Positions 9,901 to 53,442 of a stretch of DNA of 64,000 nt are shown piece by piece. Origin of the DNA: Auanema rhodensis (lineage: Eukaryota; Animalia; Nematoda); the NCBI GenBank assembly GCA_964057225.1, contig OZ059898.1, forward strand, positions 16,430,001 through 16,494,000, given 5' to 3'. The notes under the pieces were generated by a model, which worked only from the letters and a program-made list of their open reading frames with translations, ran no database searches and had not been told where the DNA came from. Position 1 is the stretch's first letter; each line of letters starts with the position of its first letter. The position numbers and the translations under genes are program-made.

Positions 9901-12900
9901 GAACCTTCTTCTCCAAGAAACGAGCAAGATGCAAATGCAACATTTTCCATCAGGGAAGAAGGCGATGGTAAATTTATTTTACTCAATAGAAGAATGTTCC
10001 TTTATTTTAGTATTTATGAACGACCCCGAAAACGAAGAAGAGAATACTGGTGATGGCGAAGATGCAAATCGAACAATTGATAGCAGTAATGCTGAGAACG
10101 CTCCAAACGTTCCAGAACCTCCAGAGTCAGCTGAGGAACAACAAGAAGAGGTTCATTTTCTTTGTTTCTTTAACAAACAATTTCAATTTTAAGCAAGAAA
10201 ATACGCGTGATGCAGTGCTATCCGAGGCCTCATCTGTGGACCAACCGGATGCCAGAGAAGATTGTAAATTGTCCAATACATTAATAGTACAAATATTTTT
10301 TCCAGCAACTGCACGCTCAAGAAGATATAGGATGAGTGCTGGTGGTCGGAATTCAATTTTCAGAAGACACAATCAGGTGACAAATAATACTACAGGTAAG
10401 CAGTGTAGTTTGTGATATATAATTGGTTTGTGCTGCAGCTTCTGGCTTAGAGTGGACTCGACGTACATTCCCTAACGATGAAGAGTTTGATACATCTATT
10501 CGTTCTAGAGTAATATTCAAAATTATTTTCAAATCTATTCAATTCATTGTAGATTTCTAAATCAACAGATCGAATAAAGAAGAAAAACGGAGATCCTCTT
10601 CCCAGTTCTATCCAGACTGGAGTTGAACTCGCAACTAGCTTTTCCTTTTTAGTTAGATTAATAGATGATCTGATTATTTCTATGTGTGACCCTGCTTTGG
10701 AGAGAAGTAACATTAATTTGAATTTGCGTAAAGAATATCTCAAAGATATCATGGTTGTATAAACTAAATTATTATTTTAAAGATACATATGTTCTTAGGA
10801 TGTTGTCATAAGGAAATTAGAGCCTTCATGGTCTTGGCTTTCGGTTGCGATGGACAGAATGGAATCTCAATTACTGTTTGGAAATGCTATCATTCAAAAC
10901 ACATCTGGTGAAATTAAGCCGAAACAAAATAAAAAGAAAGACCCAGCTAAGAAAGAAAAAGGTATATCATTCTGGGTGTAATATTAAATACACTTATACG
11001 CTCAGTATCAGAGGATCCCAGTACTGCTGCTTTGAGAAGGGAGTCATTGTCGTATATTATCGGTACCATGCGAGCTCAGTCTAGGGAAGCAGGAGATGAT
11101 TTCCCATGCATTGAAACAGAAGTATATTCTAAATAAGCAACAAAGTGTTATCAATTTCTTTAGAATGTGCGTATGCTAGTTTTTGTATTTGATGCATATC
11201 TGATGTACCATGATACTTTGGAGAAGATTAAGAATATGTCTCAGAGAAATCTGCAACCATCCGAAGAAGATCCTGCTACTAGTGCACTTACTGTTCAACG
11301 ATTTTTCAAGGTTTCTTTAGTTTCATCTTCTTCCTTATGTTTTAATTATTCAGAGATCTGATTCTTTATGTTTCCCAGGTGCTTTAAGCTCTGGTGCTTG
11401 GGATACATTAGACAATAAAACCACTCATATTCCTCTGGCTGAAAAGCCTTATTTACTGATCCCCGAAGCTGAGAGAGATGCGTTGTTCGCACCACATCGT
11501 GAGCCTTTCAATTTTACCCAGTATAAACAAGTAAGTTATCTTCAAATATGCTGGAATTTATATTTTCCTCTCTTTTAGAATTTTTTGGCACTTGGAACCG
11601 CTAATATTTTGAGCATGAGCTTATCAGATCCACATCCTGATTGGGACATGTTTAATCAAGCAGATATGGACATTAGCTCCGAGGATTTAAAACAAACATT
11701 TGATATGCAAAGCTACCATAATTTAAAGTATTCGCTAAGAGGAGCCATGTCAACTCCGTTAAATAAGTCGTTGTCTCGCTGGAAAAATGTTGTTCAGTAT
11801 ATGGCTAAGGTATGAATTAGCCAAAAATATTGTCTCATTAATTTTTCTAGGAATGCTATCAGACCTTACTTGATACTTACGGTGGTGATCCAGGAGATAG
11901 TCCAATTCTTTTACATATTGCTAGTTTCTCTGTGAAACAAAAGATGTTCCGCTCTGCTCTAGAACGGGTGAAATGTACTCAAACGAAGGATATTGTTTTA
12001 GATGTGATTTTTTTTGTCGAAATTGTATCACATCAACGTTCTTTCAGGTTCATCGAGATCCTCAGCAACTTATTCGTGGTACTGTTTTCCAATTAAACAA
12101 AGCATATGTCCGTCGATTGAATGTACCGAAAACAAAGGATAGTCCACAAACTGTGATGGGATTCGCTAGGGTTTATATCAAATTATTTTATCCTACATAA
12201 GAAAATTGATTCAGGTAAAAGTTCGATTTCATGATGAACCAGGCGAAGGATCTGGAGTTGCTCGTAGTTATTATACCGCATTAGCTGAAGCTCTTCAAAA
12301 CTTGAAAGTATTTCCATTTGATGACTACGGCTGGGAGGGTGAAGATTTTATTTTCGGAGGCTCAGATTGCAGTGCTAGTCAACAAAGTAATAGCAGCCTA
12401 TGTAAGAATTAAGCTTTCCTCTTTTACAATACTTGATATTTTTAGCAAATCGAGAGCGTGTTCCTATGAACCGATTAGCCTTAATGAGAGAACGTAGTGC
12501 CAATACTATTCTTAGTCGAAGGAAGGGAGCCAAGTAGTAATTTCTGGTTGTTCTTAATTTTTGAATTAATTTAGACGTTATCCCTTAAATGTCAACTCTG
12601 CTCCATATATCGTAGAGGATATTGCTGCTGCTGAATCCCGTGTTGCTTCTGTTGTTATACGTAATGAAAGTAGAAATAATGAAGAAGCTGCTCGGGATCG
12701 CCCTGCTCTGGCTGAAGCTATTTTTTGCCGGTATAAGTTTATTAATTTTTTTTAAATAGTATGTTTTCACAGAGTGAGAAGCATGAAGCCTGTTGCCGCT
12801 GCTAGAATTACTGGTATGATTGTGGATATACCTACTGCGGGTATTTTCCATCTTGTTAATAATTTTGATATTTTGCGGTAATTTCTTTACGGAATTCTCC

Positions 12901-14189
12901 TTTTAAACTGTTTTTTATAGCCATTACGTGGATGATGCTGTTAATCTCATGCTTCAAACAGGTTTGCCTAGTGATCTCGCTCTTTTAAACGCCACGGATG
13001 AAAAAATCGGTAATTAAATCTGTACACTTCGTTTATTCGGTAATACATTGTAGATCCTCAACCCGTGGAACATCCTGACACTGACGATTTCCCTCTCTTT
13101 GCAAAATCATGTCGTGGAGGAAATTTTGTTGTACCTTTGGCTGGCAATCTTTCTCCAATGAGATTAAATACTTTCCGTAACGTTGGAAGAATTATTGGAT
13201 TGTGCTTGGCTCAAGGGGAGCTATTTCCACTGAAGTTATGCCGTCATGTCTTCAAGTATATACTGGAACGACCAATCGGATGGCTAGATGTACAATTCTA
13301 CGATCTCCAAGTACATTCTAAAACATATTTTGTTTTTTTATTAAAATTTTAGCTGTTCAATGGTTTGCGTCACATCATTTCTTCGAATGATGAAGATTTC
13401 GAAACTTTGGCTTTACGTTTCTTGGATGATCTTTCCGAACCTGGTTCATATGAGGTATCATTTTTTTGGATACCATTCCTCAGAATTCAAATTCTTGTAG
13501 AACTCAGCATTAAAACCTAATGGTGAAAACATTCCGGTGACTAAAGAAAATGTGATAGAATACGTCTATAGACTGGTTCATGCAAAACTTCTAGGACCAC
13601 GAAATACCAAATGTCTTCAGGTAACTTTGAACTATAATGAATATTATATATTGAGTGTATTTAGGCTATAAAACAAGGAGTTCATGATGTTTTACCGGCG
13701 GAAACACTTAAGTTAATGAATGCTGAAGATCTACGTCTTGTTCTTTGTGGAACAGAAACAGTATGTTTGATGTAAGTCCTATCATAAATTCTGTGTTGTC
13801 TTTCAGATATGTATGACTACATTGCAATCTCGTACGTCTTTCTCAGATGAGTCTCATTCGTCAGTAGACACTATTGATAAATTCAAAGAATGGTTCTGGT
13901 CAGTGTTCGAATCATTATCCAACCAGGAAAAACAGGTAAGCTAATTTTTATGCTGGCTCTTTCATTTATACCTCTTCAGGATTTGCTATTTTTCTGGACT
14001 GGAGCTCCTTCTTTACCCCCTTCGTCTTATCCATATCCAACAGTAATGGTTCGTCCACCCGATGATATTTATCTGCCCACTGCTAACACATGTATATCTC
14101 GTCTTTATGTGCCTTTGTACTCAACTAAGAAAATTCTCAAGAATAAGCTACTTCTAGCTATCAAAGCCAAAAACTTCGGATTTGTCTAA
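3952..14189 (+). CDS. ubr-5: E3 ubiquitin ligase UBR5/EDD/hyd (UBA, UBR-box, MLLE/PABC and HECT domains), about 55 short introns
   Basis: [33 protein letters not shown] (UBA); [43 protein letters not shown] (UBR box); [10 protein letters not shown] (MLLE); [11 protein letters not shown] and the C-terminal [17 protein letters not shown]...KNFGFV (HECT). Every intron I traced was GT-AG. Confidence 0.95.
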
Positions 14190-30845: not shown

Positions 30846-33800
30846 TATAAATACACAAAGACACATCGAAGTAGGCATATGAACACACATATGCACATAT
30901 CTTGTCACGTAGATCAGGATGAAGCCATGTGTGATTCACTTGCTATCATTGTTTAATGTTTATTCAAAGTATTTTAAGCAATATTTCTTACATTTCCTTT
31001 TCTAGTCTGTTCCAGTTTTCATTTTGTCGAGAAAAAATTACCTCCTGGTAAATAACTCGTTTCACTTCTACAATAGCTGAAAGAATTGTTGTTTTTATGC
31101 GATTTGGTTCTTTTACTCTTTTTACTTCAACTTTTCTTTTCGACCATCATCACCATCATCATTGTCGTTGTCATTGTCCTTCGTTTGCTTGCCTTGTACG
31201 TACCGTAATTATGATGCTCTTAAAAGTTTCAACGAGTCTAAAATTCTACCAGCATTCCATCAAACTTTTCTGTTTTTCTTTCTTTGACAAACGCAGTCAC
31301 ATTCATACAGATGAGACTGTAAGTATGAAGGGCTAGACAGCTATCTCTCTTTTCTTTCATATTATTCCACTCCTTTTTCCTCTCTTCTCTTCCTTTGTTC
31401 TTTTCATGCACCTTTCTTACGACAGGTGTTCATAACTGAAACTATTTCATCCGGAAATAGTGTAGAAATTAAGAAGGATGTCCGGCCGACTGCTTTTTGA
31501 TAGCTACATTTCTCCTGTTCTGTACAAACAGCCTTTCAACAGCTCATATTTCTCGCTTCCAATCCACTTTTTACGCTCAGAACCCTTCCTGACAGGCAGA
31601 ATGTTCTATTGTCTCCATGTTTACCTACTACGATCTAGAATTCACAATCTTTTTGTTCCATTTCTCTCAATTCCCACATCTTCCGCAATTCGATTAACAC
31701 AGCTCTAGAAGTCTTGACTCAGGAAATAGCAAATGTCTTTTCTGAGTTTTGTCATTTTCAAGTTTCGGGTTATTAGATTTAATGTGCCCTCAAAAACCGT
31801 GAATAGGTTGCTAAGGGAAAATCGTAAAAGCGGTAACTTTCAATGAATACATCTAATGCAACGTATACATATGTATAAATATGAATACGTCAATATGCAG
31901 GTTAACTATAGATTCTTCTGGTAATCTCTCTAGGTATTCTGATTTACATTCCACATTTATTTTTCTTTGTAGAATATTATCCACAAAAATGTTGATCTTA
32001 TTTCAATATTATTTCTTCCAAACTATTTTTCGTAATCTTATTTTTTCAAAATTAGTCATGAAACCACTAGTAGTACTAATCTTGCTAATTTCAGCTGTCA
32101 TCTATGATGTTCTCCTGTTTCGAAACAGAGGAACAACCTACTACGAGTCCAAATACCAGAATTTTTGTTTCACTTTTTCTCAGCCAGACCATCATCGTGA
32201 AGTCAAATGATCTCTTCCGTAGCCCTAAATTATAAAAGTGTGTATATTTTCATTTGTTAATTAGCTCATAACTACCTTGTGCATTCTTCTAATATTTTTA
32301 TGAAATGTTATCATAAACTAATTGTTATAATTATGTTATTATTATTATTTTATTGTTAATTATAATTGTATAACCTACTCATTCATTCTGCTTGTAAATA
32401 CTATTATTTGCAGTCTTTTCCGGTTTTATAAGGCTTGTTCTTGAGAACAAACTTAATCGGTAAAAGTTTTTACCTTTCCTCTCTTTCTCTCATTATCACC
32501 TCTTTTCATCATCATCATCATTTTATACTTACTGGTGCTTAGTTCACCATCGTTTTTTTTTAATTTTTATCACTGATAGTCATTATTGCCATGCCTTTGA
32601 ACTCATTATTATTCTTTCTTTAAGTTAAGTCAACAGATAAAAAAATCCGAAATTTGAAATTTGCTTCAGAAGCTAATAAAAATATTTTAATTAGACGTTT
32701 TTTAACTAAAGGAACAGAATGGTCATAAAGAATACATTATTGGCAAATTACAAACTTTTCCTTCATACTATAGGTCAATGAATCGACAGGTTTGTCCTCA
32801 TTAGGAGCACCGCTTTGATTTTGTTGACCAAGACTGCACCTATCCAGCTTCTTTCTTTTATTATTATTTAAGTAGAAGCTCCCACTATAAACAAACAAAT
32901 TATTTGATTATTAGAGGATAACATTATGAAACATAATTTAGCGCCTTATTTGATTAGAAGTTCAAAGAAGAACTACGTTTGTTCTACCTGTCGTTCAAAC
33001 AAAACGCTAAAAGACAAAATCAAACTATTGAGAAGCGTCATGTCATTTGAAATTAAGCATGAGACCCGCTTAGCTGCTTATAAGTACTTAATAAGTAGAG
33101 CTTGGACATCAACCATCTGTCAACTAGTTAACTCGATTTTCACTCTTCTCTTTATTGGTTTTGTTCTTATTCCTATTGAGACGAGTCACTATTCAAGGCC
33201 TTCTTTGTCTCCGCTTATACTGCCATCCACAAACACATAATCCACCTATTCAGTCTGTTCAACTATCTTATTGTTCCTCCGTTTACTATCCAACAAAAAC
33301 TACAAATCTCTTAGCCGTCCTGTCTTGTAGAAAAGGGGAAAAAACTAAAGAGGAACAGATGAAAAGATAAAGATGTGATGCCGGGAACTGTTGGGTATTG
33401 CGGATAGGATTCTAAATGGCAAAAAAAAACAAAAAAACTTTAATAGTAACCAAACCTATATTTGAAACATTCTGTTACAATCAATCTTTTGATTTTCTTG
33501 CAATACATATACAACATGAACCAAGTATACGTAAGCATAAAAGCGAACTAGTTTGTGTACACTTTAACAAAATTCTATATATTCCTTGGAAATCGACAAA
33601 GACCTCATTGCTAAAAGAAAAACGAATAAATATGTAGGCATGGAAGTTCAGGACAAAGAGGTGAATGATAGTTCAAACAAAGTTTGATCCGGTACACCAC
33701 TTCCTGACAATCAAAAAGACCGACAATTGCGCCATGTTAGCAAATCGCTATAGGAAGTCATGCTGGATTACGGTAGCAAACTGATCGGGACCTTCTTCGC

Positions 33801-47248: not shown

Positions 47249-50145
<2,897 letters not shown>

Positions 50146-50451: not shown

Positions 50452-51725
50452 ATGATGAATGTTGATGAACTTTCGAAGTTTGCCAACTTAGAAAAAATAG
50501 GAGAAGGAACTTATGGGGTTGTCTTCAAAGGTATTCACCGAAAGACTGGAATGAAGGTAGCTTTGAAAAAAATTAAATTAGACGTGTAAGATTACAACTG
50601 CGAAGTATTTAATTATAATCTATGTAAAGTGATGGGGAAGGAGTTCCAAGTACTTGCATTCGCGAAATATCTCTACTAAAAGATCTCAATCATACTAACA
50701 TTGTACGTTTGTATGATGTTATTCATGCTGGTATGGGCTTATTTTTCTAGCGTATAAATTCAAATTTGTATAGAAGATCGTTTGTTCCTTATATTTGAAT
50801 TTGTTGATAGAGATTTGAAAGGGCTTCTTGATTTGCTACCTGAAAAAAAATTGCCAATTGAATATGTCAAGATAAGTTCTCTTGCTTCTTAATATATTAA
50901 GTATTTTTCACAGCTTTGTTTGGCAGTTGTTGCAAGCTATTGCGTATTGCCATACAAGAAGAGTTATTCATCGTGACTTGAAGCCACAAAATCTTCTTGT
51001 TGATTCCAATGGAACCATTAAGCTGGCAGATTTTGGATTAGCCAGGTTTTTCTGTTCTTTTTTCTTATTGTATTTTTTCTCAGAAACTTTTCAATGCCTA
51101 GTAGAGCATATACACATGAAGTAGTAACTTTGTGGTATAGGGCGCCTGAGGTAAGTTTTCTAATTTCATCCGAATTAGAACAAAGTTTTAGGTTTTATTG
51201 GGTGGCAGATATTATTGTACGGGATTAGACATGTGGAGTTTGGGTTGTATTTTTGTGGAAATGGCTACCGGGGATTCCCCTTTCCAAGGGGATTCAGAAA
51301 TAGATCAGCTTTTCAAAATTTTCAGCTTATTAGGCACTCCTACAACTGAGGTTCAGGATGATTTTTGTGTTTCTTAAGAGAATTATGAGTTTTAGATTTG
51401 GCCTGATGTAGATTTACTACCGAATTTCAAGCATGTTTTCCCCAAATGGAAAATAAATGAGGATAATTTAAGAAGAGCTATGGGATCTTTAGATGAAGAC
51501 GGAGTAGCATTAGCACGTGTGCGTTTGTGTATATTTTATAAATTAGATATATATATATTGATTTTATCTGTTCAGGATATGTTAGCTTATCATCCTGAAA
51601 GTAGAATAACAGCGAAAACGGCTCTTGGTCATCGATATTTGAGGAATTTATCACTAGCTCCACCAGAAGTTGGCTCTTTAATTCATAAAAACACTAGGAG
51701 TACTCGGTCAAAATTGCAGCATTAA
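50452..51725 (+). CDS. cdk-2: Cyclin-dependent kinase 2 (PSTCIRE variant)
   Basis: [58 protein letters not shown]. Contains an apparent AT-AC intron. Confidence 0.88.
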
Positions 51726-52050: not shown

Positions 52051-53442
52051 ATGGGGGATTATTACTGTGAAGACGATGAGGATGGTGACTTTAACTATGG
52101 TTTAGCGGATGAAAAAATTTATGATAATCAACGTCCTTCAATTATGATCATGGGGCTAAAAAGGTAGGATTGGATGTCAAAATTAACTGATGTCATTCAA
52201 TTTTAAATAGAAGTGGCAAAACTTCAATTAGGAAGGTGGTTTTCCAAAAAATGTCGCCCAATGAAACATTATTCGTGGAGAGCACAAGCAGAGTAACTTC
52301 AAACGGTATATGATCAGTATAAGGATAGCTATAATTTTGTTTAGCTTACAAGTCCTCATTCATTAAATTCGATACTATTGAGTTTCCCGGACAGTTAGCT
52401 CCTTTCGATCAATCTGCCCAACCAACAGATATTTTCATGCGATGTGGTTTGCATGTGCTTTTTTCATTTTGTAAAATTTTTAAATTAGGAGCTCTATTAT
52501 ACGTAATTGATGCACAAGAAGATCTTTCCGAAGCTTTACGTAAGCTGATTGAATATTTCAAACAAGCATACGAAATCAACAAAAATATAAAGTTTGAAGT
52601 TTTCATTCACAAAGTTGATGGATTAACAGAGGAAAGACGACTCGATTGTCAGTTCGACATTTTCGAAAAGGTAAACATAAATTTATTGAATAAAAAGTTT
52701 CTTATTTAAGGTAAAAGAAACGCTGATTAACATGGGCCTGGAAGATATACAGCCGACATATCATTTGACTTCAATTTATGATCACTCTATATTTGAAGCT
52801 TTCTCAAAAGTTGTTCAAAATTTGGTTACACAGCTGAATACTTTGGAACGACTTCTGGATATTTTTAACCAGGTTAATAGAAATACATATATTTTTGTTA
52901 TTCTCGTGTCTCCAGGGTTCGAATGTTGAAAAATCTTTCCTTTTTGATGTTAATTCTAAAATATATGTAGCTACTGATAGCAATCCAGTAGAAATGGCAG
53001 CATATGAGCTGTGTTGCGATATGATTGATGTAGCAATGGATTTATCAGGGATTTATGGGTAGAAATTAGGTCTAGTGTTACTCTTATTAGTTATAATGTA
53101 GAGGTACCCTTGTACAACATGAAGATGGAAAACAGTATCTGCAGTGCTTTGATGAACATTCATATGCTGTTATTCGACTTAAAACTGAACAGGTATGAAT
53201 ATTTTAAATGCGGTTTATTAATCGGCCTGAATCTTCAGGTTTTATTTTTGAGACAGCTGGATAAATATCTTGCTATGGTTTGCATCATACGTTCCGATAA
53301 TTTTGATAAACAGGGCCTTATTGATTACAACTTTACTTGCTTCAAACAGGTATTTTCGCTTTTTCGTTTCTTTTTTCATATTCTACTGCAGAGTATTGAA
53401 AAGATTTTCAAAGTGCGTAAAATCAAGAAGAGTTCTACTTAA
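52051..53442 (+). CDS. ragc-1: Rag GTPase RagC/D
   Basis: [78 protein letters not shown]. Confidence 0.95.

Follow-up and report, generated by a model that had tools for sequence, protein, structure and literature searches.

U2-type AT-AC introns were counted at 15 in human, six in mouse, three in fly and none in C. elegans, and make up 0.003-0.008% of the introns of human, mouse and fly (PMC1557818). In the prevailing view, such introns descend from U12-type ones with AT-AC termini and are trapped (PMC2831892). Lin et al., who stressed the G at position +5 of U2-type AT-AC introns, considered a change from GT-AG to AT-AC within the U2 class very unlikely, as it needs simultaneous mutations at both termini (PMC2831892). 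On theoretical grounds hardly any such change is expected, since an intron with only one of the two mutations should be null.

Yeast and mammalian mutants have shown what the terminal bases do: with A at +1 the second catalytic step is blocked, and a terminal C restores splicing (Parker and Siliciano, 1993; Chanfreau, 1994; Scadden and Smith, 1995; all cited in PMC1557818). Splicing is rescued because the first base of the intron and its last base re-form their non-Watson-Crick contact. U12-type introns follow the 5' splice-site rule RTATCCTT (PMC2846911), and rhabditid nematodes were reported to have neither U12 snRNAs nor U12 introns (PMC2846911, PMC10639083). The nematode 3' splice-site consensus is TTTTCAGR (PMC1557818). 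In the literature searched, AT-AC introns were not reported from Auanema or from any other rhabditid.

Here we describe such an intron in a stretch of 64,000 nucleotides from Auanema rhodensis (hereafter the window, to which all positions refer). Positions 50872-50911 are very probably intron 3 of cdk-2 and a derived U2-type AT-AC intron, whose removal would join the exons exactly as ...EYVK/SFVWQ... (slashes mark exon-intron or exon-exon junctions). A first-pass annotation had proposed the core of this reading, a U2-type AT-AC intron with reciprocal changes of the terminal G residues, and it was supported by the orthologues, by the gap-free fit of the flanking exons and by the failure of the 5' splice site to follow the U12 rule.

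Results

Homology searches were run exon by exon, and exons were joined only in local scripts that tested reading frames. Pfam Pkinase matches ran in order along the exons, which contained a CDK-type cyclin-binding helix and the catalytic motifs including APE; the closest solved structures, with the exons searched separately, were CDK1, CDK2, and CDK3. A representative search with exon 4 returned mostly multi-kinase proteins and gave a Trichostrongylus protein with an unusual PSTCIRE helix, and a word search with this protein led to proteins named cdk-2 in many nematodes, C. elegans CDK-2 among them. The PSTCIRE sequence was common to the Auanema, strongylid, and Pristionchus proteins. Compared exon-wise, Auanema had 71% identity with Necator, 65% with P. 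pacificus cdk-2, and 63% with C. elegans CDK-2, and the summed exon scores reached 920-1169 for cdk-2 proteins vs. 795 for Toxocara CDK1. All seven intron sites had the same positions and phases as in Necator, and five to six of them were shared with Caenorhabditis. Judged by identity, summed scores, and gene structure, the kinase gene is a cdk-2 orthologue, nearer to named cdk-2 than to cdk-1. The Auanema product itself was found in the protein collection neither by a word search with the exon 4 frame (candidates of 44-143 aa, the best 78% identical) nor with a full-length strongylid orthologue as query (candidates of 149-474 aa), negatives that say nothing on expression.

The cdk-2 coding sequence (50452-51725, plus strand, as are all its parts) consists of eight exons, whose ends were placed by eye and by script. 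Exon 1 (50452-50585) starts with the ATG, contains the glycine loop GEGTYGVV and matched Pkinase model positions 2-34; it ends in phase 2 at a boundary that was an intron site in nine orthologues aligned exon by exon. Intron 1 (50586-50629, 44 nt, GTAAGA...AAAG) is followed by exon 2 with the PSTCIRE helix (50630-50730, Pfam Pkinase) and by intron 2 (50731-50773, 43 nt, GTATGG...ATAG). Exon 3 (50774-50871) has the C-terminal sequence ...LPIEYVK, its frame ending with GAA TAT GTC AAG. After intron 3 (50872-50911), exon 4 (50912-51045, Pkinase model positions 103-145) opens with AGC TTT GTT TGG CAG at 50912 and encodes SFVWQLLQ..., the catalytic loop HRDLKPQN and the DFG motif. Intron 4 (51046-51083, 38 nt, GTTTTT...TCAG) precedes exon 5 with the T-loop (51084-51150, Pfam Pkinase), and intron 5 (51151-51191, 41 nt, GTAAGT...TTAG) precedes exon 6 (51192-51350, Pfam Pkinase). 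Intron 6 (51351-51395, 45 nt, GTTCAG...TTAG), exon 7 (51396-51518), intron 7 (51519-51575, 57 nt, GTGCGT...TCAG), and exon 8 with the stop codon TAA (51576-51725) complete the gene, exons 7 and 8 being supported by orthologue exon alignment. Six of the seven introns are thus GT-AG introns of 38-57 nt, and intron 3 is the only AT-AC intron.

The surroundings of cdk-2 are compact. An MCM-family gene with an MCM_OB match lies head-to-head on the minus strand (49318-50145) and ends about 300 nt upstream, and a gene of the Gtr1/RagA GTPase family (52051-52929, plus strand) starts about 325 nt downstream.

Intron 3 is 40 nt long, lies in phase 0 and reads AAG/ATAAGT...TTTTTCAC/AGC, with AT at 50872-50873 and AC at 50910-50911. 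The coordinates and letters given for it in the first-pass annotation were exact, and the flanking exons translate to ...LPIEYVK and SFVWQLLQ. Its 5' splice site, AAG/ATAAGT (50869-50877), follows the U2 consensus except at +1 and has the G at +5. Its 3' splice site, TTTTTCAC/AG (50904-50913), is the nematode TTTTCAG with the last G replaced by C, followed by the AG of the Ser codon AGC. Apart from the terminal bases (x), both splice sites are perfect consensus, AAG/xTAAGT and TTTTTCAx. At both ends its non-terminal consensus is better than that of any other cdk-2 intron, as expected if strong signals compensate for the odd termini.

Excision of 50872-50911 joins the exons as ...EYVK/SFVWQLLQ, as had been proposed, and the flanking exons meet without a gap at residues 105/106 of human CDK2. 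Positions 2-30 of exon 3 aligned to human CDK2 residues 75-103, and the exon end extrapolates to K105; in the solved structures of CDK3 and CDK6 the alignment extended directly to the terminal K. Exon 4 aligned to residues 106-150 of CDK2 and 107-151 of CDK1, with neither gap nor overlap with exon 3. If intron 3 were retained, translation would stop after six codons (TAA at 50890-50892), and use of the AT donor with the AG at 50912-50913 would shift the frame and lead to a stop after 20 codons. From frame and orthology we infer exact excision at 50872 and 50911, and from the splice-site type together with the literature on Rhabditida, removal by the major (U1/U2/U4/U6) spliceosome.

All donor and acceptor pairs around the gap that keep the kinase frame open and free of stops were enumerated. 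The earlier statement that no GT-AG or GC-AG pair restores the frame turned out to be inaccurate, as two GT-AG pairs (50866-50926 and 50876-50936) and three GC-AG pairs (50853-50901, 50853-50913, and 50884-50926) do so; the GA-AG pair at 50871-50913 (YVN-F), described in the same annotation as the only alternative, was present as well. The mRNA might use more usual ends. With GA-AG at 50871-50913 the product, ...EYVN/FVWQ..., would lack one residue; among the canonical pairs, 50866-50926 would remove VKSFVWQ. These junctions are in frame and stop-free, their introns all start and end with a G (+1 and -1), and TTTCACAG is a plausible acceptor. However, every alternative pair deletes or replaces two to seven conserved residues of the K-S-F-x-W-Q-L-L helix, in a segment that shows no length variation in any of the orthologues or in CDK1/2/3/5 (K-S-[FY]-x-x-Q-L-L). 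The codons for VK and SFVWQ, which would then be intronic, show coding conservation, and the donors are poor (GATAAG, GTCAAG, GTTCTC, GCCAAT). In the AT-AC register, by contrast, the consensus is perfect and the position is that of the ancestral intron, and among the enumerated junctions only 50872-50911 yields a gap-free kinase. We therefore consider the use of more usual ends improbable.

Aligning the orthologous intron, which the first-pass annotation had proposed as a check, revealed a phase-0 intron with U2-like GT-AG ends at the K/S position in all 11 species compared. For this comparison, annotated proteins were mapped back onto genomic DNA at eleven orthologue loci from four phyla, eight of them from nematodes (Trichostrongylus colubriformis, Necator americanus, Mesorhabditis spiculigera, M. 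belari, Pristionchus pacificus, Caenorhabditis briggsae, C. angaria, and Meloidogyne hapla) and three from other animals (the sea urchin Strongylocentrotus purpuratus, the horseshoe crab Limulus, and the annelid Owenia). The 5' splice sites read GTAGGT, GTATGT, GTAATT, GTTTGA, GTGAGT, GTGAGC, GTGCGT, and GTTTTT in the nematodes, and GTATGG in the sea urchin, GTAATG in Limulus, and GTATGT in Owenia; the three outgroup introns, too, are all GT-AG and U2-like. Upstream the intron is flanked by AAG or AAA (AGA in C. angaria), and downstream by AGC or AGT in 8/11 species, Auanema having AGC. In all nine orthologues that were aligned, exon 3 ended and exon 4 began on the residues flanking the orthologous intron.

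The ancestral junctions are reconstructed as AAG/GTAAGT...TTTCAG/AGC. Compared with these, Auanema shows just two differences, A for G as the first intron base and C for G as the last. Since the orthologous intron is GT-AG and U2-type in all eleven other animals, both terminal bases changed together in the Auanema lineage, and its AT-AC ends represent a derived double change in an ancient bilaterian intron of the major spliceosome.

Two further observations were made in the orthologues. In P. pacificus, the annotated cdk-2 protein was reproduced only with non-canonical TC-TT ends of intron 2 (1361-1544 of the locus), which are probably artefactual, caused either by the gene model or by the mapper's narrow search range. 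In both Mesorhabditis species cdk-2 has 11 introns, compared to seven in Auanema, strongylids, and Caenorhabditis, with the additional introns in the C-terminal half; this points to differences in intron gain or retention among rhabditid lineages.

AT-AC termini are also found in introns of the minor spliceosome, and intron 3 could be a U12-type intron or a relic of one. Besides the termini, this reading can draw on a weak branch-like sequence, TTCTTAAT, with a 6/8 match to TCCTTAAC and its second A (the aligned branch A) 19 nt before the 3' end; such a match is unremarkable in an AT-rich intron of 40 nt. The first-pass annotation had denied a U12 signal at the 5' splice site, and indeed ATAAGTTC mismatches RTATCCTT at +4, +5, and +8 and fits the U2 consensus instead. 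The sea urchin, Limulus, and annelid lineages retain minor splicing. Nevertheless, they carry U2-type introns at this very site, as do all the other orthologues (11/11 GT-AG), and U12 ancestry of intron 3 was excluded on these grounds. The minor spliceosome is, moreover, reported to be absent from rhabditid nematodes (PMC2846911, PMC10639083). An Rfam scan of the 64-kb window gave no match. Taken together, a U12-type intron or relic is the least probable of the readings considered and may almost be dismissed.

The pattern ATAAGT(24-54 nt)TTTCAC occurred four times in the window, vs. 0.89 expected from shuffling. The bare motif proves nothing by itself; what gives it significance in cdk-2 is the exact coincidence with a conserved intron position. 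The match at 12733-12770 was rejected as an AT-AC intron, as it is located inside a canonical phase-2 GT-AG intron, CG/GTATAAGT...TTTTCACAG/A (12731-12772, plus strand), of a UBR5-like gene with an MLLE domain (12774-12881) and a HECT domain (13065-13352). There, ATAAGT...TTTCAC lies one register inside the true ends, a look-alike that can be mistaken for AT-AC. The two overlapping matches at 33080/33091-33143 (plus strand) were taken as chance occurrences, lying within a 104-aa ORF (32926-33240) with no recognised homology. A second AT-AC intron of the ATAAGT...TTTCAC pattern was not present in the window.

Intron 3 might also not be spliced functionally at all, if cdk-2 were a very recent pseudogene with two splice-site changes, or if one or both terminal bases were assembly errors. 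Two random changes would then have to strike exactly the first and the last base of the intron and produce A and C, the one combination known to be compensating, for which we estimate a chance of about 1e-7. In addition, all eight exons are open with intact kinase motifs, and there is no other lesion in the exons or in the six remaining introns. An intact, open frame encoding a protein 71% identical to that of Necator indicates that the gene is under selection downstream of the odd intron. We regard this explanation as slightly less probable still than the use of other junctions; a pseudogene or two assembly errors would account for a very small part of the probability at most.

Discussion

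If intron 3 is indeed spliced at its AT and AC ends, U1 and U6 would recognise AAG/AUAAGU in the normal register, as it agrees with seven of the eight consensus positions including the G at +5, and the pyrimidine tract UUUUUCA would still serve as a consensus nematode 3' site. The first step would cleave before the A at 50872. In the second step, an A-C pair would replace the non-Watson-Crick contact usually formed by the first and last intron G, and the AC at 50910-50911 would be used in preference to the AG that lies two bases further on. The exons would thereby be joined as ...EYVK/SFVWQ..., giving a full-length kinase.

As noted in the first-pass annotation, an AG directly follows the AC of intron 3 (CAC/AG, 50912-50913). 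Judging from the orthologues, 8/11 of which have AGC or AGT here, it is the ancestral Ser codon and no new competitor. U2AF in C. elegans reads the AG of the 3' splice site, and one may speculate that the adjacent AG aids early recognition of the 3' site by U2AF. It is possible, again as speculation, that the AT-AC arrangement limits CDK-2 output. A wider scenario, in which Auanema repeatedly converted GT-AG to AT-AC introns, the AG of AC/AG may provide a site for U2AF35 with the AC serving in catalysis, and the inefficient step could tune kinase dosage, seems rather doubtful to us. Repeated switching, if true, would imply a spliceosome unusually tolerant of A at +1 or of C at the last base.

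While the class of U2-type AT-AC introns was already known, cdk-2 intron 3 adds a clean GT-AG to AT-AC polarity within the major class. It would show that the supposedly forbidden route has been taken in nature, and in a core gene of the cell cycle, because the intron has a GT-AG U2 ancestry across 11 species of four phyla and occurs in a lineage believed to be without the minor spliceosome. For annotation, this means that gene predictors limited to GT-AG and GC-AG introns will mis-model cdk-2 in the Auanema genome. The intron also offers a natural substrate for tests of first-last nucleotide pairing in a nematode.

With U12-type AT-AC introns, intron 3 shares the terminal dinucleotides. Unlike these, it lacks a 5' splice site of the form ATATCCTT, a proper branch site at 10-15 nt and a U12 ancestry, and it belongs to a lineage reported to have no minor splicing. 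The 'type II' introns of vertebrate voltage-gated sodium-channel genes come closer, having AT and AC ends and a U2 5' splice site with G at +5 (PMC1557818, PMC2831892). Like Auanema intron 3, they are without U12 5' or branch signals, and they belong to a very rare class. However, while a U12-type descent has been argued for the sodium-channel introns (PMC2831892), the ancestor of Auanema intron 3 was, as the orthologues show, a U2 GT-AG intron; intron 3 also differs from them in its length of only 40 nt, in its nematode-style 3' splice site and in its occurrence in a lineage that, according to the literature, is without minor splicing. The engineered yeast and mammalian double mutants of the first and last intron nucleotides, as far as they are described in PMC1557818, contain the same reciprocal pair, A at +1 and a terminal C. 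While those are laboratory constructs, the allele in Auanema would be natural and apparently fixed, in a cell-cycle gene of the essential type.
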